Shown piece by piece: positions 10,801 to 54,100 of a DNA stretch of 54,100 nt (position 1 is its first letter; the number at the start of each line of letters is the position of its first letter). Source of the stretch: Perkinsus chesapeaki ATCC PRA-425 (Eukaryota > Protista > Perkinsozoa). The position numbers and the translations under genes are program-made. The notes under the pieces were generated by a model. The model saw only the letters and a program-made list of their open reading frames with translations. It did not search any database and was not told the origin of the DNA. The stretch spans positions 1 to 54,100 of the forward strand of contig JAAPAO010000198.1 of NCBI GenBank assembly GCA_013115145.1, read 5' to 3'.

Positions 10801-13670
10801 AGTTGGAGGACTCCTAGACTAGAATTCCCGCCGCTCTTCAAGTCCCGAGCCGGAGTATTCGGTTCCGGTAAGGGGTAGCTGGTACTACCAGCTACCCCTA
10901 CTATCAGCCTGGTAGGCGCAGCCTCTAACCAGATTCAACGCTGTCAAAAATGCAGAACATATTTTCTTGTTGCTTTTCTCAATCGGTGGAAATCTCGCTA
11001 TCTTCGCCTTGACAGCAATTGCGTTAGGTAATCTTCTGATCATCATAGTGTTTCAGAGATTATGTTTGGTTATATTGCGGCTTTGCGAACTGCAATTTTT
11101 TTGCATTACGCACATTCATTTCTTTCCGAGCCTGCCCTGTGACCACGTGACGCTGTTGCTCTTTGTTCAGCTGATATTGTTAACTCCTGCAACTGGCTTG
11201 GTAACCGTCAAAGGCTAACTGAGGTCATCGATGAGATGTGCAGCAATTGGGAGCAGTCCATGCTGGTGAGCAAGGGTATACGGTCTTAGAAAGGACAATT
11301 CGCTTAGTGTCAAAGCTCTTTTGAATTGTTCGAGAAGTAATTAGTTCAACCAGACATGGTGTCGTAGTGGCATCATCATCATCATTATCGCCGCAGTGCA
11401 GTATGTTCCACGAAGCTAATAACCTTTTCCAGTTTATAGTTAGGTAGTTGTTTAGTATAGGAAACCTATAACCAGTTTCCTATACTTTAGTTACTACTAC
11501 AGTATTTTATGGTGTATTATACACTTTACTATAGCTTCTCTAATTCGGCGATCACTGCACTGTGGTTCCATCGCTATCGTTACACTAATTTGTCCGCTTG
11601 TCTGGTTTGACCTTTTTTGTGAGTATCTTACAATCCACCATATAAGGCGTGGCTCGAGGAACGAGGATATCAATTTTTAATAGTGCAAGTTTCTTAATGA
11701 AAGCAACTGTTCGGATAATAGACTATTATCTTATAAAATATAACGTACTGAATACATTGTTTCTGACAGTAACCTGAGAATCAATCGCTTCCCGGAACAA
11801 TTCGTATTTTGGTTCTTCCTCATCAGATTGGTGCCGGTCACCAGCTAGCTCTGAGTGCAGCATACGCCTCGCTTCCCTCCGACAGTCGAGTCCACGATGC
11901 CAATAGGAGGGACTATGCGCAAAATGGTAGGTGTCTCCTCCCAAGCGCTTCGGAAATCTCGTTCTACTGCAGGCTTGCCACATTACCGCGAGCTCTTGCG
12001 GCTGAGAAATCTGCTCAAGTCGGACGACAAATGGCTGGATGTGGCTGAGGCGTTGAGGCTGACGGCGGCCCGCGCGCTGAACAGGTGAATTCGAAGAAGG
12101 TTTACCAGGACGACTTGGTGATTAGAGAGACGTTCGCTGTGGTGAGTGCAGCGGGTCCGGAGGAGTCAAAGGAAATCTGGGGAGGCTTTAGCGGCCGACT
12201 TTCGAGATCAGGTAGGAGGTATGCCTCAACGATTTAGAGGTAGATGGTCACTATCAGGTGCTCGGGAAGGAGGCTCCAATTTGGTAACTGTGGGAGCTCT
12301 CGGCATACCGGGAACATCCTATGCCATAGCCTCACCGACCGCACAGGTGAAGCGACCGGCAGATATTTTCATTGAGCAGTTGGTCAGGTTGGATATAATT
12401 CCAGAGCATTGACTGTGGCAGAGGGAACGGATGTTGGTAACGCTATTGTGGCGGCTCAGTTGGTTAATATGAACTATATGTGGCAACAGATACGCATGCA
12501 GGTGAGGGAATGGGGGGGGTTGGTGAAGTGGTATATCTGAGCCGGTTATATTGTATAGCGTTGACCATACTGTCATTAGCTGCTAAGGTTTCACGGTGCA
12601 ACTCCGCAATGTTTTATCATTACTATTTTACTGTGTTGTCTTCTGGTCTGTCATATTACAGTGTGTCTACTCGCATTTAGGTATTAGGTAAATATAGGTC
12701 GTCCAACGCCTCACCTATTGCTTGTCACTCCTCGGACAACGACAGCTTAATGGTTAGCAGATAGTCATAGTTAGGGCCGATTTTCTTAGTACTGCAATGC
12801 ATGGGCTAGTATCTCACTTGATGACGATCTACTCCTTAACTGCTTGCTGTCATGTCAGGGAGGAGCATACGGTGCAGCATGTCAATTCAATCACCGCAGC
12901 AAGACGTTCGGCATGACCACTTATAGAGACCCGCATGTGAGGAGGTCTTTGCAGATTATGCGAGACGTAAGGCCTCCGCCTTACTTCGGGGATTATCTTC
13001 AATGCAGGCTGGCAAATGGTTGCAAGATTCGGCGTCGTTTGATTCGAGTACGGTGGACCAAGCTACAGTTGGTGTGATAGGGCAGCTTGAGATAGGCCAC
13101 TTCATGCCTGATGAGGTAGAGCCAGCCACTGATGCCCTTCCTGTGTGGGTTCGTGTATGATTAGCATTTGCTACATGATACTTTAAAGTCTATGAGTCTC
13201 CGTAAATGTTCTACAATACTGTGCAGTAAGCGTAGGTCACCGTCTGCATGTGATTTTGTAACCGTAGTAATATTGTACACTTCTGCGTAGATGTGTATGT
13301 TTCATGTCCTCTTTGTGAATCACAGATTGTAATTGAGTGACCTGCTTAAAAGGCTATCATGCGAAGTGTGGAATGGTCGATGCACCACAGTCGTATCTTT
13401 GCAGACACTCCGCGCATCATTGATCCGCTGGCTTGCTGGTGAGACTCCCGAGGAGCGCCAGGCCCGCCGTATTGGCATCTTGGCGGCTACCAAAGAGGGA
13501 ATCCGTGAAGTCGGTGAGCACATTGTCGACACGAGCTCCTCTGCTGAGGTAACACAATCACCAGTCGTTATCGTCTTGGTAATGCTTGACAGGTCTGCAT
13601 TGGAAGTGAGGCAGCACTAACTGAGGCTGGTATCAGTCCAGTACTACCGCTTGTTGGAGATGCGGAGTAG
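7827..13670 (+). CDS. PREP: Presequence protease / falcilysin-like M16C metallopeptidase with a long N-terminal targeting leader
   Basis: Inverted zinc motif HVLEH in TPPEDNSGVAHVLEHSVLCGS; FLNALTYPDRTCYP; GVVYNEMKG; YRFDSGGDP; FKLREFNTG. C-terminal exons give ...YMWQQIRMQ|GGAYGAAC...TYRDPH. First exon 7827-10046, followed by about 11 spliced exons ending ...VGDAE* at 13670. Confidence 0.93.
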
Positions 13671-15704: not shown

Positions 15705-17470
15705 TTAGATCGCTCTATCGGCGGCAAATCTCGAGTGTGTGTAGTCCCGGAACACGTCGGAACCGCTATCGGTGTGATCCCTCTAAAATCGGAAATGAGT
15801 ATGTGTAGAATTCCGCACACATGGCGAGCAATAGTGAGCTGACTTCTGACATTCTTGACCGCGGCGAGTCCGACTAGAGAAGTTCAGGGCTACTGAGTCA
15901 GCAGTCCACTTAGAAAGCCCTACATACATTTCAGCAGTAAAGAGAATTCAATACGCTCGTTGAGTTCGATCGGATGGCGAGGAAGTCGAGTGTGATGTTA
16001 CAGTGTTCTGGAAGTGCGAATGTTATCTGCGCCTCGCTACCTCCTTGTTGTTTGTCTCCTGCCTGAGGTCTTTGGAGTGAATTTCCTTACAGCACCTGGT
16101 CATCAAATGTGTTTCCAGTAAGATACCGCCGATCTAGCAGTTTGGTAGGGAGTGTGATCATTAGTCAGGACATTTCCAGTGACTCGGCTATAGTAGCAAA
16201 GTACACCAAAGCTACGTACTTGATGATGGAAGGAGTAGACGAGGTCGATATGCAATTGGAGTAGGATCGCCATCACACACATTCGCTCGGGTTTGAGATA
16301 TATTCCAACACTAGCTAGAATGCAACCGTCTCTAAAACCCAATAGTTCCAGATAGAATCGTTTCAATATATAATTGGTAACAGAATTTTACTCCACGGGT
16401 TCCTATTTATAGTGCTGAATATCTTCATTATGGGACCATTAAGGTGCGAACTGCGCTTCGTGCCTCGCGATGTAGAAGGCGACGACGGCACAGGAACCCG
16501 AAACCAGCCTACGATTCGTGCCCTGCCGAAGGTGGAACAGTCGGGACAAGAGGCTTTCTCGCCGAAGTTTGGTGAGCTTGCAAACTTCATGCTACCAGTT
16601 GATTGTTCCGTGCAGGTGGACAATATGATATCTGTGTGATATGCCTCGAAGAGCCCGGTGGTAGATGGAAGGCACAGTTAGCGAAGAATGCCAAGTATGC
16701 GACACTTCCAAGGCCGCTAATTATATCCTGGAATTTCCTCAATTTATGTGAATGAACTAGCATGCCAGCTAAGCGGTTCATTCCTGGCTACTTTGGCTGC
16801 TACTAGACTAGCATCTCGCATCACACAATCTTTGCTTTAACAGCGTGTGAGAATCGTCGCAAGATGCGAACTGTTGTTTAGGACCAAATGGAGCCTGACA
16901 GTTGATGTGCTGGGTGAGGTCGAGATGATGGAGATGCCCTTTAGTTCCGGGGATGCAGCAACCAGCGAAAACTTTAAAATCACGTAACTAATTGCATCTC
17001 ACAATCCGTTTAATCCGTCGGTCCACGCGCAGCTGTGGTGCAGCTGCTGCACACTACCATGGTGCTTATTCTTAGAGCCAAAAAATTAAAAAGTTTAATC
17101 GGAAGGGTGACTGGCATGGTATCGGAAAACGAATATGAACGGCGCCAAGAGGAAGTAAGACGATCAACTGTAGCTCATGTAGGAACCGTTTTTAGATCTT
17201 TCGCGATACGTCGGAGTTGGTGAACAGTCGAGTGATGTGGGTTGCTATTTTGCAGATTTCAATCTACGCTGTCGCCTGCGCGTATCAAATGTAGAGAGCA
17301 TCTGTACGGCAGTCTTACTTCATTTGACAGTGTTCTTAGGCGAAGTCTGCGGGGCTTCTTTAGGCAGCATAAGATTTTCTAAACATGTGCCAAGGTATGC
17401 TGTGTTGTGTTCCAAGTGTGGGTAATGCCTGCTAGGCATCACGAAGTATCTATAAACTGCTCCTACTGTA
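15705..17470 (-). CDS. Possible spliced hypothetical gene (fragmentary model)
   Basis: Several AG/GT-bounded open segments on the - strand, e.g. DIISGLGSVAYLAFFANC, DGCILASVGIYLKPERMCVMAILLQLHIDLVY, IGGILLETHLMT, and a last exon RDHTDSGSDVF...DRAI*. I could not build one continuous frame or recognise a family. Confidence 0.2.
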
Positions 17471-18785
17471 CATTCTTGGACCTTCATCGTGAATCGGGGA
17501 TCGAATACACCCGCTACTGCTCTTGTCACGACCGCAAGCCTTGCGGTCGTCACAAGCCTTAGGCCTTCTCTAATCGTCAAGTCATATAAGGTCCACTATG
17601 GTAAGTGTGGACCACGCAGTGTCATTCCTCATAGGCGCTGACGGGACTCCCAACCGAACGAGATATGTTGGCAGTTATAGGCCAGGGTTTCGCGTGGGTG
17701 CCCTGTCACTGAAGTAGGGCAACAGCATGTACAATAAACATCAACCAATTTGTACTCCGAACGCTTGGATGCGCCCTGGTGGGCTGAAACGAACTCCGCG
17801 GTAACTTGACTAACCAGGGGAGATCGTTGGCCAACAATGCTTGCAACCAGCTGCGTGTTCTGGAATTAATACCACTGGAACTGCAGTCAGAATTACCTGT
17901 CTCTACTTAGACACCTTGGACACCTCAATATATATACGGTTAACGAAATGTGATTTATATGGGTTCAGTATTATAGTCATGACCGAATTCCCCGAAGAAA
18001 TTCCTCCCTCTTGTCGGTTGGGTTTTAATAGTAAATGCGTCCATCCTACAACACCGGTGCTTTCGGTGAAGTTAAGGCGAAACCTTTCTACGCGGCATGC
18101 CAACAAGGTGGGGACATTCAAGTGATGGAAAGCGATGTGTCGTCTAGGAGATGTGGCTGAAGCCCGGAAACTGCTGTATGATGACCCAACAGAGAGCACG
18201 TTCTGGGCAGAGAACGAATGCGTTCCTTGTCCCCTAACACTAGCCGTTCACAGTCAATCACCTGCTATGGTACGTACGAGCATAAGCAAATGCCGTGGAT
18301 AAGCCGAGCAAACAAGTTTAATCAGGTCGAGCTACTACTGCAGCACGGCATAGGCAAACCAAAAACGGTAAGACACCCATCACCACCTCTGAAACTCCCT
18401 AGGCGCGTCGATTAACTAGTTTCCCCGCGAAACTTTGGCGAGCCAGAAGTTTTGACTCAAAACTGATTGCATAACCAGCTTTGTCAAAGTTCGACGAGCG
18501 AGCCATCTGCCGGTCAGAACAATATGATATGTGGCCCTGCCACAGACTGGCAGAGAGCCTCTGAGGCAGATAGTTTTCCTTCTGATGCTGAAATTGTTCA
18601 TTTATGTCGCGCGCTGCCGCCTATAACTTAGTAGCCTACTTCTTGTGTAAGCGAACAGCAGGCAATATAGGATAGTGTAACACAACGCAAGGCACGTGAA
18701 TACTCTAGCTTGGAGATGACGGTCTCTGATACAGGTTATTGGCAAGGCAATGATCGCTGCAGCCATGGTTGGCAACTTGAAGATC

Positions 18786-20196
18786 ATGAGCCTTCTGTCC
18801 TCTGCCGATCCGTCTATCGTCGATTACGAAGACCTTCAGAAAGATCCTCCGTCAACACCCTTACTTGCTGCAGTAAGAGTATCCGCTGCTGCCTTTCAAA
18901 GATCGTGAGACTACCGATACCAGCGAGTTAGACTCGCCGAGTTTTGCGTATCGTAGTCCGATTGTAAGTCGATAACTTATCGACGATTATATCGTCGAGA
19001 GTGGTCGAATACTTCTACTCGGAAATCACGATGTTTTCGCTTCCCCGGTTTTTGTTCCAAAAGCCTTTCCAATGAAAAGTTTTTATTCCATAAGCTACGT
19101 TCCAAGATATACTACGCACAGGATGAAGCAGTGCGAACGCTTCTCGACTTGTCCGCCTCACCCATCGGACCACAACCGGAAGGTTTCACCCCCCTCCACA
19201 TGGCAGCTCATACAAATTCGACATGGGCGATGGAGATGCTTCTCGGACGGACATCCGTGACACTTTTAAGCAAGGTTGGGGTGCCTCCTAGGTCGCTGTA
19301 CAGTTATACAACTAATAGGTGCCTGGATTCTGCGGTTCCGCTTCTGAAGGAGAGAATCAGCCTTCAGTGATTCACGTGGCTATTCGTCGATGCAATCTTG
19401 AGCTTGTTCAGCTACTGCTACGCCATCGAGTAGCATGCACATCCGCCGCAGCGTCGTGAAATCGTCTTTACGCAATTCAGGCTGACCCGACTTCACCTTC
19501 GGGGCCTGATGGCGTAACACCCTTGATGATTGCATCTCAGAATGGGAACGCTGGTAGAAGCTGAGCTACCACCATAGCACCTCGGCAAATATGCTCAGTT
19601 GGCGCCGACAACATCGTCAACTTCCTTTTGACCATCGACTCTGTCAGAAGGAGTGTCAACGCTGCTTGCGGGCGCGCGAAATCAATCTACTGCGGGTTAG
19701 GCTCGCCTGACTTGTGGGCCAACACCAACTAACAGCGACGTTAGATACACGGCTCTTCACTTTGCAGCAGAAGCTGGCTGCCTCAAAGCTGTCCGCACCC
19801 TTCTCATATCGGGCGCTTCCCCGAACAAACGTACCGATAGTCATAAACAGTTAAGGTCAACTCGTTCATGTTCTATGTGAACTATCATCGCAGGTATGGC
19901 CATCTTCCTCTGGACCTTTTTCGCGCCAGGGCACGTCCGGAGCTCGGTGGCCATACTTCCGAAAAGGAAGCGCTTGATGATGAAATCTCGCAGGAGCTGA
20001 CTCGTTGCGGCCTCTGCGATGCGAAGGGTTCGACAGTTGTATGAATCGCATGCGATGTTTGGCAGCTAGCTGCTTTACACATCAGTTATGTTTCCGCTGT
20101 CACGCGCAACGCTACTGCACTGACACCTGCCAGAAGAGACACTGGCGTTCACATAAATCATGCTGCAATAACATGGGTGCCGAAAAGGCTCCTTAA
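18786..20196 (+). CDS. Ankyrin-repeat protein with a C-terminal MYND zinc finger
   Basis: Ankyrin motifs GFTPLHMAA, VIHVAIRRCNLELVQLLL, GVTPLMIASQNG, YTALHFAAEAGCLKAVRTLL and GHLPLDL. These are followed by CGLC...LCFRCHAQRYCTDTCQKRHWRSHKSCC (MYND). The junction between exons 1 and 2 is uncertain. Confidence 0.85.
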
Positions 20197-20439
20197 ACGA
20201 CAACAACAGTAGGGCCAGCCTGCGACCATCCTCGTAAGCTCTGCGCTATCGGCCGGTGCAGCTTGTACACGAGTGATTCATTGCTCATTAATCAATCCAT
20301 CGTATGGTTTCCATTATCATAATTGGGTGTTGGTGGAGCATGTAACTTGATTGAGTAAGGACGTAAGTCATTCACGATGAGTGTTGGCGTTATAACATAT
20401 AGTTCCGCTCAAGTAAAAGGTCCTACGGAATATCATATT

Positions 20440-21975
20440 CCATATTCCGAATATGGTTTTGCACTATACCTGCAAAAATTACCCAAGTATACCCGTTAAC
20501 AATTTATTGAAGAAGGCGACGAAGGACTAATAGTCCTGGACTATCTCTAAAAGTGAAGTAGCGGGTTTCGAATGCCCCTAAAAGGGACAAACGATACCAT
20601 TCCTCCCTTTGATGCCATTCGTTTCGAATTGCATCAAGGAAGGACTGGTTCCGGAAGGAGTTGCTGAAAACCTCGTCCAGAAAACCCCTCACTTGGATCC
20701 CTAGAGTCTGGGGGTCTGACCCCAGTCCTGTGGCCAAGTAGCACACGCTAAAGAGGCCGACTGGACTTGAGGTGAAAAGAGATCCCCAGTGATACTGGTT
20801 TGTGAACCAGTACCAACCAAAACAGGAGCAGCAGGAGGAGGAGCAACAGCAACCGTATCATCGTCATCATCATCCGGTGTCTCGGCAAGGCCCTTGCCGA
20901 GACACCGGGGGCACCTGGGGGCACCACCGCCATGCCCCTGGGGCATGGCGGTGGTGGCGGTGATGCCGAAGTCTTCGACTCGAAGAAGCTGTCGAATAAC
21001 TTTACGCTCACATCAATATCATTATTATCGTCTTCGTCATCCTCGTTGTCATGATAACAAAGTGTCATTGTCATTGACAATGTCATCATCAACCGCGTTC
21101 AATTTGAACGGTTTAAAGATGGAAATTCTACCTCCGGCTTGGGCCACGGTAGAATTGATGACATGATGCTTCGGTTTTCAATGACAACTCGTCATCAACG
21201 TCGGAGGGTTGGGCTTGTTGTCACGAGGGCGTTTCGGCATAATGGAATACAATAATCCTACAAAAAACCTTACAAAGAGATAAGACAACAACGAATATGC
21301 TTTACGCATACAAATAAAAGAATCATCATCATCACTATCAGGAAATTAGTCGAGGAAATCTTCATAGAAGAAAAGCGGTGGCCTTTGCCCGAGTGAGGAT
21401 CATATCGTGCAGTGCATTGGGTGTCCAAAAATCAAACAAAATCAAAAAAAGTGAACAAAGGTTGCCCAGACTGGGCAGCCCAGTTGCGTGTCTGCGTGCA
21501 GATGGAACAGAAGTTTCAATGATTCTTGGGAATCCCAAGTTGGGATCAATGGTACTCAATCATAATACTGTATCATGATCGAGTATCAGTGATACTGTAT
21601 TGTCTGTATCACCAAATACTTAACTATTCAGATCCAGTATCATTTTGACCTTTTGTTTTGGCTGTAACAAGATCTTAATAACAGACTGTTATTAACAGCT
21701 GTGTAACCGCAAAACGACCACTGTAAATACCACTGTACTGGGCGACGCAGAGCAACTACAATTATGACAATTGATTTTTCGCCTTTTCGCCTAGGACACT
21801 AGACCAAGCTCGGTCGCCCACCGCTATATTGCAAGTATGAGAACCTTCTAGGCTCGGTATAGTGATAAATAATCACTAATGAGCCATTGGGCCTCTTTCA
21901 CAACAAACTTAAGTTTGTAGATTCTTAGGGTAAGGACTCTTTTCCCACTTACTTAACTTACCGGTGACTCACCGG
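20440..21975. repeat. Cluster of at least 14 short inverted repeats (7-17 bp arms), each with a 1-nt centre
   Basis: Read directly from the sequence. Examples: ccggtgtctcggcaagg-c-ccttgccgagacaccgg (20874-20908), caccaccgccatgcccc-t-ggggcatggcggtggtg (20922-20956), ttaataacag-a-ctgttattaa (21675-21695). Confidence 0.9.
20504..21240 (-). pseudogene. Degenerate frameshifted coding-like segment (acidic/Pro-rich), origin unknown
   Basis: ATG at 21240 (MPKRPRDNKP), then coding-like stretches in three different frames (DNEDDEDDNND..., PDDDDDDTVAV..., FLDEVFSNSFRNQSFLDAIRNEWHQREEWY...) with no convincing introns linking them. Confidence 0.25.
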
Positions 21976-22727
21976 CGGTGAGGCCGTTTCACGGAAAACT
22001 CAGACTTGACCCTAAGAGACCTTACCTTAAGATTTACCATAAGTGAGGTCTCACCGCAAATCTTAAGATCTTACCACAAATCTTAAAAACTTGCGCATGT
22101 TGCAACGCGTGGTGACAGTACTGCGGAACCCTTGACACACTTCACGCGCGACGGCCTCGCGCGTGGCCTATGTTATAAACCGTTGACCCCCTACATCTCT
22201 GAGGGGAACCGCACGGATGACGAACACGACGTCCTTTAATGCATCAACTTGCTTTTAGACGCTGCTCGTGCCGTGCAGCCTGTCGACGGCATAGCTTCCC
22301 CTCTGCTGTCGCAAAATTTGTTAAACGCATGCGCAATTGAAGTGATCGGAAATCGATTCCGACACGCGCAAGTGCAAAAGCATATAGTAAAATTGCTCCA
22401 CGTGGATTTGTACCCACGAGGATTTTTCGAAGCGGGTATGAAGATTAGCGGTGCGAAGTAGGGGAATTATTCCCCGGGAATACATTTTCAACACGTAAGG
22501 TCAGGGCAGGGGTGGTCTACCGGTAAGTTAAGTAAGTGGTTAAGATCTAAGTAAGAGGTTAATCTGAACAAGTTCACTAACTTAAGGGTAGGGTTCCTTA
22601 CCTTAAGGGTGAGGGTTCAAAACTTAAGTAATCTTACCCTCCTTATCTGGTAAGTGAAACGATTTTATGTAAGTTCTTAAGTTCTTACTCGTAAGTTCTT
22701 AAGTAAGTTGCTTGTGAAAGAGGCTCA
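21888..22727. mobile_element. Non-autonomous TIR DNA transposon (MITE-like), 840 bp
   Basis: Terminal inverted repeats tgggcctctttcacaa (21888-21903) and ttgtgaaagaggctca (22712-22727) match at 15/16 positions, with AT on both sides. A second exact 21-bp inverted pair lies at 21945-21965 and 22519-22539. Both ends are packed with CTTAAG/CTTAC/GTAAG motifs. No transposase ORF. Confidence 0.8.
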
Positions 22728-22956
22728 ATAACTAATAAGCTACGAGGGGTCTAGAGAATTGAAACCGTTTATAATATCTTTATCGATTATCCTGGCGCAA
22801 GCGATACTTACGCTAATTTCTCGCGCGCCCGATTTTTGAAATGTGTGATTGTCCATTCCGATGGGCTCCGAGACTCTTTAGATGTCTTTATGTTGAGTAC
22901 AATTCTAGTACACTTTGGTGTTAGCAAACCCCTTTTTTGGTGTTAATAAGCCCGTT

Positions 22957-24464
22957 ATGCGTTATTATCGAGATGCCGGCTACACACATGGCTACGGCTA
23001 CCGTGGTGATGGTTACTATCGTGATTACTATGGTGATGGAAGGTCATCAGCTAAAACGTATCACACTTGGAGCAGACATCGATCTTACAAGTGGCGAGGC
23101 TCGAGAAGTCGGTCACATAACGGTACGAGGTCTACCAGGTGGTCCTCTAGAGGGTATGATGACGGCTACTCGAAGAACAAGCACTACTATGATCCCCAAA
23201 GCACCAAAAGTTACTCGACTACGTCACGAGGCTCGAGCAGCAGTCGGAGTGCTTCGACGAGCGACCATCCCCCGGCCAAGAGTAAGGACGATGACATCGT
23301 GCATTTTGATTGGAAGAGGGGCGATCGACTTGGCAGCTCTGGTCGGTATATCTGCATGAAACACCTCGGTGATGGAACTTTTGGTAGAGTTATTGGATGC
23401 GAAGATACTCATCATAACAACCAGCTGGTTGCCGTTAAGGTCATTCGTGATGTTCAACGTTACAGGGAGTCGGCTGAGATCGAGGCTGAGATCCTCCAGA
23501 GACTCAATCGTCGTATGGACAAGCTGGGGCTGACACACGCCGAGACACACATTGTACGGTTGTATGAGACATTCCACCACCGGCAGTACTACTGTCTGGC
23601 CTTCGAAGTTCTCGGCTGTAGTCTCTATGATCTCATCAAGGCCAACAACTACCGTGGACTTTTCATGACGGACGTTCAAGCACTTGCTCGAGCTCTTTTC
23701 AAAGCTTTGAGATTTTGCCATGATGAGCTGAGGTTAACCCACACAGATTTGAAGCCAGAAAATGTCCTATATATGCAAGCTACTACGAAACATGACGATA
23801 GCTGTTATGAGCTGGATACAGCAGATCTTCCCAGGCGACTGAGAGGGTGTGATGGCCACTCTAGAAGTCGATCTAAACTGTACCTTCGACCGAAATGTGA
23901 CAAAATGAAGGTTATCGATTTTGGTAATGGTACATTCAGAGACGACCATCACAGTTCTATTGTTAATACTCGGCAGTATCGAAGCCCAGAAGTTATACTA
24001 GGCCATGGATGGAGCGAAGTATCTGATATGTGGAGCGTTGGTTGTATTCTCATGGAGGCGTACAGCGGTGAGCTGTTGTTCCCGACACACGACAATCTCG
24101 AGCATCTACACATGATGGAGGTAGGACTCGTGGTGAGTTTTATCTTGATAGTGTGTTTTCATTTCAGAGAGTTCTCGATAGAAGGTTTACGTCACATTAT
24201 CTCGGACGTTCCAATTCGGAGGCGAAGGCAAAACTGATAACGCTTGATCGATATTCCCAATGGACTTTGCACGGTATACATGACCGGAAGCATTTAGAGA
24301 ACATTGAAGACTGCCGTCCGTTACGTCGTATGGTAGCTCCAGGTCACGAACTGCTTGCAGACCTCGTCGAGCGATGTCTTGAAGTCGATCCTTCCAGGAG
24401 GATAACGGCGGCCGAGGCGCTCAATCACGAGTTCATGTATACCGATTTCACCTATAATGAATAA
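22957..24464 (+). CDS. CLK: LAMMER/CLK-family dual-specificity protein kinase
   Basis: R/S/Y-rich N-terminus. Kinase motifs GDGTFGRV, VAVKVIR, HTDLKPEN, DFG, TRQYRSPEV, DMWSVGCIL and EHLHMME|RVL. Single intron 24121-24167. Ends DPSRRITAAEALNHEF...NE*. Confidence 0.93.
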
Positions 24465-41199: not shown

Positions 41200-43762
41200 T
41201 CACGACACGCTGCATCGTAGTAGACCCCATGTCACCAGTGACATTTCCGAGGGTACTGTATTGATGTCTTTGGCCTAGCCAGGCGCTCACACTCCGTCAC
41301 TCGCACTTCGCACCATATAAGTATAGCGATTGAGTAGCATGTGAAACTCAGCCACTTCCTGGTCGATGCCAACCTCAGCCCACACTCTAATCTGTATTCT
41401 TAATTCAGCTTTGTATTTCATTTATCAAAATCAACCAGGAGGTAACAGTAGGGGTCAAACGCAGCAGTGCATGGAGCTGTGAATGGTCCTGGGCCAGGAC
41501 TCCTGGCTCACGAACAGGGTGGTGCTCAGGGTCGACTGGCACTGAAGTGGTTGAATGACTGTGAGCGTTCCCAGACCAGTCCGAAACAAAAAGAAGTGAT
41601 TCCAGTTTCAAGACCGAATACTGAACGAGACACAAGGTTCACTTAACGGCTCTGGGTGGCACTGAGTGGATTTTCTGGCATGGAGAGCTCGACACGCATT
41701 GAACACTTCTCCACCATCGGGGCAGGTTCGACAAGTTGCTGATGATGCGACGTATCCAGTTCGATTGACTCTGCAAGGTTCTTAAGAAGCCGGTAATGCT
41801 CTACCCTGTAAATATGAGAATGATAAGGATTTGGGGACTCTACGAATCTTACCACATTTCAAGCCACTTTTTCGGCATCATTATGTCCTGGCGAGGAGCA
41901 CCGACCTCCCTTGCCCACTTCAGCGTGCTCAGAATGTCTTGAACTCGCTCTTCTGTCGACAGCAAATCGGAGAGTGCCTTCTCACTGTGGAACTGAGACA
42001 CTATTTGTAAAGGCGACAAGTGCTTCAACAGTGACCATCAGTTTCTGCATCGCATGGCCATGAACAGTCTTAATCCTGGTATCGACAGATACAGCACTCT
42101 CCCGTTCCAGCTGGGAGATCAAACTGTCAATCTCGTAGAGGAGTGACAGCAATAATTCCCTGAACCGCGTCGTTGGCCAGGCGGATCCGAAATCGGAAAC
42201 ACTTCTCACTTTATTGCCCCGCTGGCATCACTCTTGTTCGAGTCCGCTGCAACAGCTTGTCCGTAGGCAGCAACTGTATAAAGGCTTGACGACAAACCTT
42301 GGCTTGACCCAATGGCTCACAAAGTGGTTGAAGGCGCGATTCATCAGTATTAATTGGATATTGCTCGCTCCGTGCTGTATCACTGATGGCGATCTTCAGC
42401 TACATGCGCGGGTCTTATCCAGAGAGTATCGGACAGTCTCACCGACCTTCGTGTCCCACCAGGCCGCACCTGGGGTTTCCTCTCTATCGTCTATAAGATA
42501 ACAACTCCCTTTGGCCATGCCGGGTCTCTCATTTATTGGAACTCTTATATGCCTTTGACGTATAATAAGGCTAGACTCAACAACGTGCTTCCGCAACTCG
42601 GCATCTGGGAGGGGACAACCGTGTCATCAGTTAGCAACAGAGGAGAGCCGAGAACTTCATTTATACGGAAAAGACTTCTACGGCTCAACGAATCAATTGT
42701 ACTTCGCATCTTTTCATCGGGATCCCCCAGTTTCTCTTGCTCATGCAGTTGATAGTCACATTGCTTGCACAACTTCGCTCGGTCATTAGTGCACCACAAT
42801 GTGGCGCAATTGGTCCCGCACAAGTCACAAGGCAAGCCCTGTAGCAGCGCTCCCGCTGGTCGACCTATGGTTCGGATGAATGGATGAAGCCAGCTAGACG
42901 TACCGTCGAAATTGTGCCCCGCGGTTGATCCAGACTCGAGCGAAGAGGATACTTGAACCTGGTTGGCGGATGCGAATCACACCTAGTTTGTTGGGTTAAC
43001 TCTAACAACGTATATCGGTAGGAGCTGTGACTGGGCATCTCTAATAAGGTAGCGATGGCTGAAGAAAGATGTACAAAGGAGCGGGTGGGCATCCATTCCC
43101 GGCAGCTTCTGAGTATTGGAGAGCAAGTAGGAGTCAAATTTGCCAGTAACAGCTGTAGCGTTTGAACGAGGACCATCATCGAGGACCTAAGCGATCTCGG
43201 TATCTTTGATCGCCTCATATCTACCCACTTTGTTCTGTCCAAGACGAACACGACATAAAACGATCTCGAAGAAGTCGATGCCGGAACGCCTCGTCAGAGC
43301 TTGAGGGGAGGGAAGGTGTCGATTGCCGAGGTGTAGTTCAAAGGCACGGATCTGACATCCTTTGCAGTCAGGCATGCTGAATAAAGTGCTACCCCAGCGA
43401 ATCCATGCTGTGCCACGCGTCGAATTGGGACTCTGGGAGGGAGCTCGCTAGCCTCAATAGCTACTGTGAAGGAGCTCTCGCGTGCCTCAGCACTAACGCG
43501 TGAAAGTGATGCGTCGAATGCGCGGTTGAGTTCAGGATGTTCGACTGCCCACAAGCTGCTCAGTCGCACACTGAAAACGTTATAAGGTTCCTGGGAGAGC
43601 CAGACAGTGCTTCGGACCTCGGGCTGGATCGATAGATGCACTGAACGGCCCACTCCACAGCCCCCCATTCGTGCAGGTTTTCGCTGCGGCGAATTGGTCG
43701 ACAAGTGGATGACACGTACCCAACATCAGAAGGAGCGAGTCCCTTGAGCGAGGAATTGTCAT
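41200..43762 (-). CDS. B-box zinc-finger protein with N-terminal PARP/ART-like domain and C-terminal helical region (3' end approximate)
   Basis: Model MTIPRSRDSLLLML|VHLSIQ...LSSLWAVEHPELNRAFD...HGFA|...FEIVLCRVRLG...|...KFDSYLL...SHRYLIRDAQSQLLPIYVVR|...PCDLCGTNCATLWCTNDRAKLCKQCDYQLH. The B-box pattern is clear. The ART-like call rests on the LCRVxLG, DS and YxI.D..Q.LP.Y.V pattern. Confidence 0.7.
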
Positions 43763-49173: not shown

Positions 49174-50936
49174 TATGAGACGGATGATGATGAATCTAAC
49201 ACCGAAGCGCGGCTTTCGACAATCTTGCAATCTTACACACACTCACATTTCCGTAACGGACGTCTCCGTTTCACGTACGTTGGAGCGCGTGAGTAATAGA
49301 TAAATCTATGGAATCGGTTTGCACCATCCTTCCTCCTGGGAGAACCAGCTACCTGTGGGATACTGGTACGCCGGAGAGGCCATTGCCTTCGGCCACCTGG
49401 GTCAGCGTTGGCGAGGCCACGCGCACGCGCGCAAATGTCCTCGTTCACCATACACTGTTACCTTACCTGTTATAGGTCTTCAAATAGGAAATCATGACAT
49501 TTCCCCAGGAGTACACACTCTTCGTGTTCTATCGCTACATTACTCTTCATTGTCCTATCGTTACTATTCTGGCCCATTAGTCAACATAGGCTTGAATGGA
49601 TGCTCTCAACTATGCCAACAACACTGTACAAAGTACACGAACTACACTGCGGACTTGTGTGGTCTCAGAGAAATCGGTTGTGATTGAGTTGTTTAAAGTT
49701 AGTCAGCGTTATTGTTGATATATTGTTAGATTGGTAAGCCGGAGATTGATAACACCCCCGAGAGACCATGAGATAGCTAACACACCTTAGTTATTCGGTA
49801 GTGTCAGAAAAACAAGGCCAAAGTTCAAGGGCGACAAACGCCCGAAAGAAGAGAGCTCTCCAACGTTATAACAACTCCGATTCACATCTCGCATTAAGTG
49901 TTGCAATTTCTGTCAAGATGCAATCGTAACACATAGTAGTTGTGCGTTCATACCAATCACAGCAAACCATCAAGAGTCTCGATCTTTATGTCGTAATTCT
50001 AGACCAGTCTTGAGCGTCCAAACCTGCATACACTTATTCAGTTCTGGCAGGAATAGCATTAAGAGCACTTCCGCGCGACACTACAGATGTTCCATTACTA
50101 CTAGTGTCAAGGTCCAGACCGAGTCTCAGCTGTTTTCTACTCAGCACAGCAGATGCAAAGCCATGGTTCGTGACTCACGTAACGTGAGTAACAGCAAAAG
50201 GTTTTCCGTTCGGCGGGTTGTACTTTACTATAAATGTGCTTTACCTGCAACTTGTATCTAATACGCGAGCCCACAGCGGAGGAAGAAGAGATACTTGTCG
50301 AGGACGTGTCAATACGTGCGCGCGCAACCCCCTTTTCGAAATTGGATTCCAACTGGAATTTCCAGCGGTAAGTCATTTAGCGTGTCTTCGAATCCGTACC
50401 CAGGGTTTCCTACAGTCACCCGCGCCTCGGTTAGGCCTTCACGGTCTTCTATTCGCTCCCTCCTTCATGGTTTAGCCACTGCATGTGCGTTCTTGGGACG
50501 CGCGGGCTTGCCGCTCCGATTGTGGCTGATTTGTTACTTTTCTCACGCGTCCGACAATCCAGCCGAGCCTCTTGGTGATATCTGCCTCTTGACTTTGTGT
50601 TTTGGGCAGCACACAGGCCCCAGATAGTCTTGTACTTTGCGTCTCGCTATACGATCCCGTGCGTGCGGCACGCAGCGTGCCAGGGGTGGTTCTCGCAGAA
50701 AGTACTAGCTGGAATCCCAATTTGCATTCCACAGCCTGCGCTGTAGTTGCTGTGACTGATCACATTGGTCGATTGGTTTTTCCTTTGTTTCCAGTAGTCT
50801 GATTCTTGCGCTTTCCAATGGTTGGGACTAGTGCCTCTCTGGTCGTCGCCGATCACGAAATTTGTATCCTTCTATTTCATAGCCGTGTGGGTTATCTACA
50901 TTGTACTCGACTGTTTACTACAGGCTTGCTCTTCTA

Positions 50937-52526: not shown

Positions 52527-54100
52527 TTATCCACATGGACAAGGAATATCAATTCCATGACACACACTAGGGTGCAACCAGTACTTACAGTAGCTACCTC
52601 TGCTTCTTTTGTTGCAGAAGGCGTCGCATGTCTCAGTGCTTGTCATTGTGGTGGTCGCAGTTGTCGAAGTAGTTGTAATGTTAGATGTGGTTGGTGAGGT
52701 CGTAGCAGCAGGTGTAGTCGACGAAGTTGATTGCTCGCACCAGCAGGGTATGTCGGTAGCATAGCATACCTTTGGGTTCAGCCATGCCTTGCAATAGCTA
52801 CCTTTGTGGAATTTTCTACAGTGCGCATCACCAATCTTGCAATCCAGGGACCCAGAGCTAGTGGTAGATTGAGTTGTGGTTGTTGCAGTTGTCGGAGAGC
52901 CCGTCGGAGTTGTTGTTGTGGTAGTTGTTGGACAGCCCGTTGGAGTCGTGGTTGTTGGACAGCCCGTTGGAGTTGTTGTAGTAGTGGTTGTTGGGCAGCC
53001 CGTTGGAGTTGTGGTTGTAGTACTTGTGACTGTCCTCGAAGTAGTAGTTGTAGTAGTACTTGTGGTTGTCCTCGAAGTAGTGGTTGTAGTAGTACTTGCG
53101 GTTGTCCTCGAAGTAGTGGTTGTAGTTGTCGGACAGCCCGTCGGAGTTGTTGTTGTGGTAGTTGTTGGACAGCCCGTTGGAGTTGTTGTGGTAGTTGTTG
53201 GGCAGCCCGTTGGAGTTGTTGTTGTGGTAGTTGTTGGACAGCCCGTTGGAGTTGTGGTTGTAGGAGTTGTTGGACAACCCGTTGGAGTTGTGGTTGTAGT
53301 ACTTGTGACTGTCCTCGAAGCAGTAGTTGTAGTAGTACTCGTGGTTGTCCTCGAGGAAGTGGTTGTGGTAGTACTTGTGGTTGTCCTCGAAGTAGTGGTT
53401 GTAGTTGTCGGACAGCCCGTCGGAGTTGTTGTTGTGGTAGTTGTTGGGCAGCCCGTTGGAGTTGTTGTGGTAGTTGTTGGACAGCCCGTTGGAGTTGTGG
53501 TTGTAGGAGTTGTTGGACAACCCGTTGGAGTTGTNNNNNNNNNNNNNNNNNNNNNNNNNNNNNNNNNNNNNNNNNNNNNNNNNNNNNNNNNNNNNNNNNN
53601 NNNNNNNNNNNNNNNNNNNNNNNNNNNNNNNNTCGTGGTTGTCCTCGAGGAAGTGGTTGTGGTAGTACTTGTGGTTGTCCTCGAAGTAGTGGTTGTAGTT
53701 GTCGGAGAGCCCGTCGGAGTTGTTGTTGTGGTAGTTGTTGGACAGCCCGTTGGAGTCGTGGTTGTTGGACAGCCCGTTGGAGTTGTTGTAGTAGTGGTTG
53801 TTGGGCAGCCCGTTGGAGTTGTGGTTGTAGTACTTGTGACTGTCCTCGAAGTAGTAGTTGTAGTAGTACTTGTGGTTGTCCTCGAAGTAGTGGTTGTAGT
53901 AGTACTTGCGGTTGTCCTCGAAGTAGTGGTTGTAGTTGTCGGACAGCCCGTCGGAGTTGTTGTTGTGGTAGTTGTTGGACAGCCCGTTGGAGTTGTTGTG
54001 GTAGTTGTTGGGCAGCCCGTTGGAGTTGTTGTTGTGGTAGTTGTTGGACAGCCCGTTGGAGTTGTGGTTGTAGGAGTTGTTGGACAACCCGTTGGAGTTG
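52527..54100 (-). CDS. Mucin-like Thr-rich protein with TPTGCP repeats and two C-terminal 6-Cys modules (5' part outside the window)
   Basis: The frame ending at TAA 52527-52529 reads TPTGCP(T)n and TSRT(T/V)xS(T)n repeats. It continues CKIGDAHC...GSYCKAWLNPKVCYATDIPCWC, a Thr linker, and CDAFC...GSYCKYWLHPSVCHGIDIPCPCG*. The frame is consistent on both sides of the N gap. Confidence 0.85.
   Translation of the reverse strand, partial: TPTGCPTTPTTTTPTGCPTTTTTTTPTGCPTTTTTTPTGCPTTTTTTTPTGCPTTTTTTSRTTASTTTTTTSRTTTSTTTTTTSRTVTSTTTTTPTGCPTTTTTTTPTGCPTTTTPTGCPTTTTTTTPTGSPTTTTTTSRTTTSTTTTTSSRTTTXXXXXXXXXXXXXXXXXXXXXXXXXXXXXXXXXTTPTGCPTTPTTTTPTGCPTTTTTTPTGCPTTTTTTTPTGCPTTTTTTSRTTTSTTTTTSSRTTTSTTTTTASRTVTSTTTTTPTGCPTTPTTTTPTGCPTTTTTTTPTGCPTTTTTTPTGCPTTTTTTTPTGCPTTTTTTSRTTASTTTTTTSRTTTSTTTTTTSRTVTSTTTTTPTGCPTTTTTTTPTGCPTTTTPTGCPTTTTTTTPTGSPTTATTTTQSTTSSGSLDCKIGDAHCRKFHKGSYCKAWLNPKVCYATDIPCWCEQSTSSTTPAATTSPTTSNITTTSTTATTTMTSTETCDAFCNKRSRGSYCKYWLHPSVCHGIDIPCPCG
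52870..54100. repeat. Coding minisatellite with an 810-bp higher-order repeat
   Basis: Units of 30-39 nt (gcccgttggagttgt...). 52891-53290 is identical to 53701-54100. Confidence 0.9.
53535..53632. other. Assembly gap (N run)
   Basis: Run of n inside the mucin repeat. Confidence 1.

Follow-up and report, generated by a model that had tools for sequence, protein, structure and literature searches.

Odd palindromes in the genome of Perkinsus chesapeaki are probably excision footprints of hAT-superfamily transposons

Introduction

In V(D)J recombination (RAG and Artemis), the sealed hairpin at a coding joint is opened off-centre on its 3' side, giving palindromic additions, and the P-tracts that result are usually 1-4 nt long. 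RAG and Transib hairpins carry no 1-nt offset and so yield even palindromes. Flank hairpins with a 1-nt offset are established chemistry of the hAT superfamily of cut-and-paste transposons. To our knowledge, excision footprints are normally known only from engineered donor sites, the natural ones being too short and too varied to be picked out. Zhou et al. 2004 are said to have placed the Hermes nick one nucleotide into the flank.

Among the hAT elements, Ac/Ds leaves palindromic footprints that have the complement of the element-adjacent base in the middle and arms of at most 20 nt in yeast (PMC5873905), and its cleavage at the flanking 5' nucleotide is followed by microhomology-mediated joining (PMC1978519). 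Hermes likewise forms hairpins on the flanking DNA (PMC4763223) and prefers 8-bp targets of the form nTnnnnAn (PMC10368747). Mutator-like elements (MULEs) generate duplications of 8-10 bp with no target preference (PMC5225508, PMC5499845). In Muta1 these are 8- or 9-bp duplications without sequence preference, and >90% of excisions are precise (PMC5225508); its flank hairpin comprises 43+43 nt, without the 1-nt offset (PMC5499845).

Here we analysed a 54.1-kb stretch of the Perkinsus chesapeaki ATCC PRA-425 genome (contig JAAPAO010000198.1, positions 1 to 54,100; hereafter 'the window') that is rich in odd palindromes, which we propose, with a probability of roughly 85%, to be excision footprints of hAT-superfamily cut-and-paste transposons. 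The proposed route shares off-centre, 3'-side hairpin opening with V(D)J joining, which, however, has no target duplication to guide annealing. Ac/Ds in S. cerevisiae, Arabidopsis and Candida resembles Perkinsus in forming palindromes with a complemented centre through hairpin opening (PMC5873905, PMC1978519). Its footprints nevertheless differ from one event to another, with 28 types in 128 Candida events, and mostly retain 0-3 nt of P-nucleotides, whereas a single product makes up 41/44 events in Perkinsus, where the full 8-nt tails would have annealed in register. Ac/Ds footprints have also been seen only at experimental donor sites, whereas the Perkinsus scars are fixed in the genome. Hermes, a hAT element of Musca domestica, shares both the 8-bp duplication and the nTnnnnAn preference with the Perkinsus scars (PMC10368747), although the predicted Perkinsus hAT ORFs resemble Hermes in sequence only in the C-terminal hAT domain. 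Finally, the MULEs (Muta1/Os3378) have flank hairpins and a duplication capable of guiding repair, but they restore their target precisely rather than leaving a 22-bp scar (PMC5225508, PMC5499845).

Results

The original prediction for this stretch described a dense field of at least 14 inverted repeats with a single unpaired central base at 20440-21975. All 14 were recovered with identical positions and arm lengths, although three more (20427-20441, 21470-21484 and 21968-21982) had been omitted. Across the window, we found 34 perfect 1-nt-centre inverted repeats whose arms were 7 nt or longer, 15 of them within 20440-21975, compared to ~4 in the shuffled window; the earlier estimate of ~0.1 chance sites per 1.5 kb was correct. 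At the same arm threshold, the window held two repeats with a loop of 0 nt, four with a loop of 2 nt and five with a loop of 4 nt, whilst the counts for loops of 3, 5 and 7 nt were the same 1-nt-centre sites recounted with shorter arms. The excess over dinucleotide shuffles was concentrated at an arm length of 7 (22 observed versus 3.0) and was also seen at 8 (7 versus 0.6), with little or none at arms of 6 nt or shorter (14 versus 9.7 in shuffles for arm 6). The excess of 1-nt loops is therefore a spike at arm 7 without a smooth decay over arm length.

For comparison, we sampled the first parts of 20 further contigs in the same 41.7-Mb assembly, 111 kb in all; the sequence analysed overall amounted to ~0.5% of the assembly. 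The predominance of the 1-nt loop was maintained, with 52 arm-7 repeats against 7 for loop 0 and 8 for loop 2. Where the arms measured 10 nt or more, repeats were likewise specific to the 1-nt loop, both in the window (5 versus 0 for loop 0 and 0 for loop 2) and in the 111-kb sample (7 versus one each). The predicted excess of 1-nt loops over other loop lengths thus held in both datasets. The dense field itself proved to be a true hotspot (described below), although the excess is not confined to it and extends to the rest of the sampled genome. The arms had no common sequence, as originally predicted, and seven palindrome pairs in the window overlapped with an offset of exactly 7 nt.

These overlapping pairs conform to a single 22-bp architecture on an 8-bp target, t1..t8, which runs t1-t7, the reverse complement of t1-t8, and t2-t8, and which amounts to a pair of 15-nt palindromes that overlap and each have a single unpaired centre base. 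Joints on an 8-bp target accommodated 26 of the 34 window palindromes: 14 in perfect scars, 10 in scars with 1-2 third-arm mismatches and two in a twin joint. The remaining eight comprised four long-armed palindromes and approximately four others, the latter matching the chance expectation for arms of 7-8 nt. Scanning for this 22-mer (n = 8) returned 7 perfect, 6 one-mismatch and 9 two-mismatch occurrences in the window, compared to 0 in shuffles, and 18, 12 and 23, respectively, in the 111 kb of other contigs. The same architecture on targets of n = 7, 9 or 10 gave nothing above background in the window scan, and n = 9 and 10 gave 0 in the 111 kb. The individual features at 20.4-22.5 kb, together with outliers, are as follows (strand is given where one is assigned).

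10871-10915, 14-nt-arm palindrome, short filler and a 7/8 target copy at 10908-10915; target GCTGGTAG; outside the field
20427-20455, twin-joint scar of two abutting 15-nt palindromes with centres at 20434 and 20448; target GGAATATG
20523-20544, perfect 22-bp scar; target AGGACTAT
20874-20908, long left-type palindrome with 17-nt arms and centre C; inferred flank GGCAAGGG
20906-20925, 10-bp tandem repeat (GGGGGCACC, T, GGGGGCACC) that links the two 17-nt-arm palindromes
20909-20921, 13-nt junction separating the two long palindromes, within the 10-bp tandem repeat
20922-20956, long right-type palindrome with 17-nt arms and centre T; inferred flank AGGGGCAT
20965-20986, 22-bp scar with 1 mismatch; target GTCGAAGA
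21066-21082, 8-nt-arm palindrome with no recognisable third arm; old scar or chance
21096-21117, 22-bp scar with 1 mismatch; target CGTTCAAA
21174-21195, 22-bp scar with 2 mismatches (older)
21463-21484, perfect 22-bp scar; target TGCCCAGT
21525-21546, perfect 22-bp scar with T2 and A7; target CTTGGGAT
21582-21596, 7-nt-arm palindrome whose third arm has 3 mismatches in either direction
21678-21699, 22-bp scar with 1 mismatch; target ATAACAGT
21883-22729, + strand, MITE-like TIR element hosting two scars; at least 6 genome copies
21961-21982, perfect 22-bp scar in the MITE; target CCGGTGAG
22461-22482, perfect 22-bp scar in the MITE; target GGGGAATA
22915-24464, + strand, LAMMER/CLK-type dual-specificity protein kinase gene, directly downstream of the scar field
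41486-41507, perfect 22-bp scar, outside the field; target GTCCTGGC
50660-50681, perfect 22-bp scar, outside the field; target TGCGTGCC

Some of these features depart from the simple form. The scar starting at 20427 consists of the left 15-mer and the right 15-mer of one target, both exact and with a 1-nt overlap, and would be the product of unfolded hairpins joined end to end without annealing. The 10-nt-arm palindrome at 21675-21695 is the scar at 21678-21699 extended by 3 chance-complementary bases. The palindrome at 20874-20908 would represent a hairpin that was opened distant from its tip and then filled in. A common 8-bp target could not be rebuilt for the 17-nt-arm palindromes at 20874-20956, as their two flanks share only AGGG, and the pair would fit either a single atypical event or two separate ones whose targets overlapped. 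Among all palindromes with arms of at least 9 nt, 6/28 retained a copy (at least 7/8) of the inferred target no more than 24 nt away on the far side, compared to 1.6% for shuffled targets.

The joint itself was highly stereotyped. Over about 210 kb, 41 perfect 22-bp scars with both centres complemented were identified, whilst the rival joints, namely a 24-mer with no offset and a joint with either centre uncomplemented, each occurred 0 times. The classical short hAT footprint (t1-t7, t8', t1', t2-t8; 16 nt) was also considered and discarded, as it occurred 5 times versus ~4 per control class and was not in excess. Where two palindromes rebuilt a single target, their centres lay 7 nt apart in 41 cases and 14, 22 and 41 nt apart once each. 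The 22-bp annealed product, representing 41/44 two-palindrome events, is therefore strongly dominant.

The inferred targets themselves were not random. T occurred at position 2 in 31/65 targets (binomial test against base composition, P = 1.5e-4) and A at position 7 in 33/65 (P = 1.6e-5), and the scar targets thus show the hAT-type preference nTnnnnAn. The genome encodes at least 11 matches above cut-off to the hAT dimerisation domain (PF05699), several within open frames of 413-532 aa, and the best PDB match of one hAT open frame was the Hermes transposase (E = 6.6e-5). Two TIR/TSD scans covering about 210 kb found no resident TIR elements with an 8-bp duplication, in a search that short or imperfect TIRs would escape. 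The hAT ORF element on contig C18, the sole one examined, was single-copy and gave no copies from which its ends could be defined, and the hAT loci had no DNA similarity to each other. Consequently, no donor element was matched to any scar within the 210 kb scanned or through this hAT ORF element, nor did any site occur there in all three of the filled, empty and scarred states.

Another hairpin-forming superfamily with long duplications could in principle have left such scars, chiefly the MULEs, which produce flank hairpins and are capable of 8-bp duplications (PMC5499845). Their transposase-domain matches numbered at least 25 genome-wide, exceeding those of hAT, and several lay in long open frames. 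However, an offset-free 43+43 nt hairpin predicts even palindromes, and no excess at loop 0 was observed; targets of n = 9 and 10 gave nothing, the targets that were recovered follow nTnnnnAn, and precise excision would be expected where a gain of 14 bp was observed. We therefore regard a MULE origin as improbable. The MULE matches were spread over many contigs (for example C46, C79, C33, C1114 and C1511), several of them within frames of 900-1,370 aa, and the Mutator-like population of this genome appears to be a large and possibly active one.

The fixed geometry also bears on template switching, i.e. fold-back mutations arising during replication or repair and unrelated to transposons. As template switching makes local inverted copies, it superficially fits the idea of sequence being copied back on itself. 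Yet it predicts variable arms and spacers, whereas we observed a spike at arm 7 with a 1-nt loop and a fixed 22-bp register, and neither an obligatory double switch complementing both centres nor an nTnnnnAn bias is expected from it. The version put forward in the original prediction, acting on an ssDNA intermediate, likewise fails to predict the fixed 8-bp register or the target preference. Overall, this explanation is very improbable.

We further investigated the MITE-like element at 21883-22729, since its other genome copies provide a paralogous comparison for the scars that it carries. Its TIR begins GGGCCTCTTTCAC (GGGCCTC), a 3-bp target duplication flanks 3/4 full copies (AAT, AAT and AGA), and the copies share 76-91% identity and contain internal CTTAAG-rich tandem units of 20-22 bp. 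It is at best PIF/Harbinger-like. In the six-copy alignment, the window copy carries 22 bp at 21961-21982 where four others carry exactly 8 nt, and these 8 nt differ from the inferred target by no more than one substitution. The second site, 22461-22482, holds its inferred target just once in the other copies. Two further copies have private scars of their own, and at one such scar the 8 nt of the remaining copies are one base off the inferred target. All four MITE scars were private to a single aligned copy (a paralogous, not an orthologous, comparison), and for 3/4 the empty sites hold the inferred 8-mer once, within one substitution. As the paralogous copies carry a single 8-bp target, each scar is derived and represents a gain of 14 bp. 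The original prediction had placed the field next to a TIR element, and this element does indeed host two scars; with its 3-bp duplication and GGGCCTC TIR it was rejected as their source and is only a passive host. Separately, the copy on contig C3411 contains a nested insertion of ~180 bp (alignment columns 566-747) with its own TIRs (ACCCCGTAAC.. / ..GTTAACGGGGT), representing a second small TIR element family.

Scars were unevenly distributed along the window. The 2.1 kb between 20.4 and 22.5 kb contained 9/22 window scars (no more than 2 mismatches), compared to 0.53 expected from the remainder of the window (Poisson, P = 5e-9), and inclusion of the twin joint and the long palindromes raised this to 12-14 events. 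Scar sequence occupied 183/2,056 bp of the hotspot stretch (about 9%). Across about 165 kb, the density of scars with no more than 2 mismatches was about 0.4-0.5 per kb. Only 1/22 scars fell in long open frames, whereas 31% of the window consists of such frames (P = 0.003). The kinase gene immediately downstream of the field has a kinase domain with 89% identity to its closest relative, a Perkinsus marinus ATCC 50983 protein, and an N-terminal region rich in Arg/Ser/Tyr. The view that the field occupies a degenerate ORF was not upheld: none of the four ORFs in 20504-21166 matched a Pfam family, and neither of two variants with the scars collapsed contained a frame longer than 115 aa. A second, older cluster was present at 17000-19100, with two-mismatch 22-bp scars at 17031, 18419, 18442, 18923, 18969 and 19065 and an 11-nt-arm palindrome at 17528-17550. 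Near the contig end, an assembly gap of 98 N spans 53535-53632.

A high density of palindromes upstream of a gene is also what would be seen if they had a function, for instance as protein-binding sites or RNA hairpins. We give almost no credence to this possibility, as the arms have no common sequence, the sites are private to single repeat copies and a 1-nt loop makes a stable hairpin tip impossible. The original prediction had already set aside a single protein-binding motif; the unrelated arms agree with this, and the evidence favours footprints instead.

Decayed scars were informative about the reality of the palindromes. In scars with one deviating base, this base lay 8 times in the left arm, 11 times in the middle arm, 11 times in the right arm and 5 times in the end pairs, compared to 9.5 for each arm and 6.4 for the end pairs under a uniform spread. 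This even spread is that of random substitution after scar formation, which an artefact would not give. An artefact of assembly, polishing or library construction had been considered, given that the threshold-like spike at a total length of 15 nt hinted at a k-mer effect and that the draft assembly is broken into 3,544 contigs. Against it stand scars in successive stages of decay whose substitutions are evenly spread, the target preference, the depletion from open frames and the exact 8-bp empty sites in paralogues, features that no known artefact generates. A k-mer or assembly artefact was dropped once the scars proved specific for n = 8, biased in their targets, graded in their decay and matched by empty sites in paralogues, and an artefact of any of these kinds is extremely improbable.

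Discussion

The original prediction that these palindromes are hairpin-opening excision footprints, in which local sequence is copied back on itself, is borne out by the 8-bp geometry, the complemented centres, the paralogous empty sites and the target preference. If they are hAT footprints, a hAT element would first have inserted and produced an 8-bp target-site duplication, t1..t8. At excision, its transposase would nick one nucleotide into either flank, and each flank would be sealed as a hairpin, with the complement of the element-contacting base at its tip. The left flank hairpin would read t1-t7, t8', t7'-t1' and the right t8'-t2', t1', t2-t8. Host enzymes may then nick each hairpin on its 3' side, several nucleotides past the tip, so that the left hairpin unfolds into a 3' tail of t8'..t1' and the right hairpin into one of t1..t8; the two tails would be complementary because the target was duplicated. 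Annealing of the tails in register, followed by fill-in and ligation, would replace 8 bp with 22 bp, and each insertion-excision visit would add 14 bp.

We infer both the 3'-side nicking far from the tip and the in-register annealing from the product alone. Provided that the tails overlap, fill-in would yield an identical 22 bp wherever the two nicks fall, and this would account for the scars being so uniform. A minority of events would be joined without annealing, giving either two abutting palindromes or one long palindrome plus filler; such un-annealed long palindromes would account for arms of up to 17 nt in the window. The dense field may reflect repeated visits to a non-coding stretch upstream of the kinase gene, with the clustering probably arising from local hopping or from a preference for open promoter-proximal DNA.

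A missing repair pathway was considered as the cause of the stereotypy and rejected, as Ku-like, SNM1/Artemis-like and Mre11 domains were all detected. The Ku domain match (C189:18552-18839, 28 bits) contains three in-frame TAA codons, probably in introns; the SNM1/Artemis DRMBL domain match lies at C245:37644-37853 (65 bits) and the Mre11 DNA-binding domain match at C1251:8187-8399 (50 bits). By sequence similarity, these loci are candidate hairpin-opening and end-joining genes of the parasite.

The hairpin chemistry has precedents in Ac/Ds and Hermes, whereas neither a near-uniform 22-bp product nor scars at this density seem to have been described. In the open-access literature, we found no account of hAT scars in Perkinsus or of any genome populated by a fixed 22-bp hAT scar. 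More tentatively, and at slightly less than even odds, Perkinsus hAT hairpins may almost always be opened distant from the tip and annealed in register, an outcome not reported as dominant elsewhere.

If the proposed origin is correct, scars of this kind would account for most of the otherwise unexplained odd palindromes in Perkinsus genomes. Transposon traffic alone would have contributed about 9% of the intergenic stretch studied here. If, in addition, the hairpins are almost always opened and annealed in the manner just described, with exactly 14 bp gained per insertion-excision cycle, the scars would represent a measurable engine of non-coding DNA growth, given ~10^4 scars (a genome-wide extrapolation only, from about 165 kb) alongside very few resident elements. 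They would equally form a readable fossil record of former hAT positions, including promoter-proximal hotspots. The 22-bp scar is long, uniform and, because each one encodes its own 8-bp target, self-identifying, so that transposition history becomes legible from a single assembly: landing sites, preferred target, hotspots and the age of visits. The scars would also report on how hairpin-capped breaks are repaired in a little-studied alveolate parasite of shellfish.
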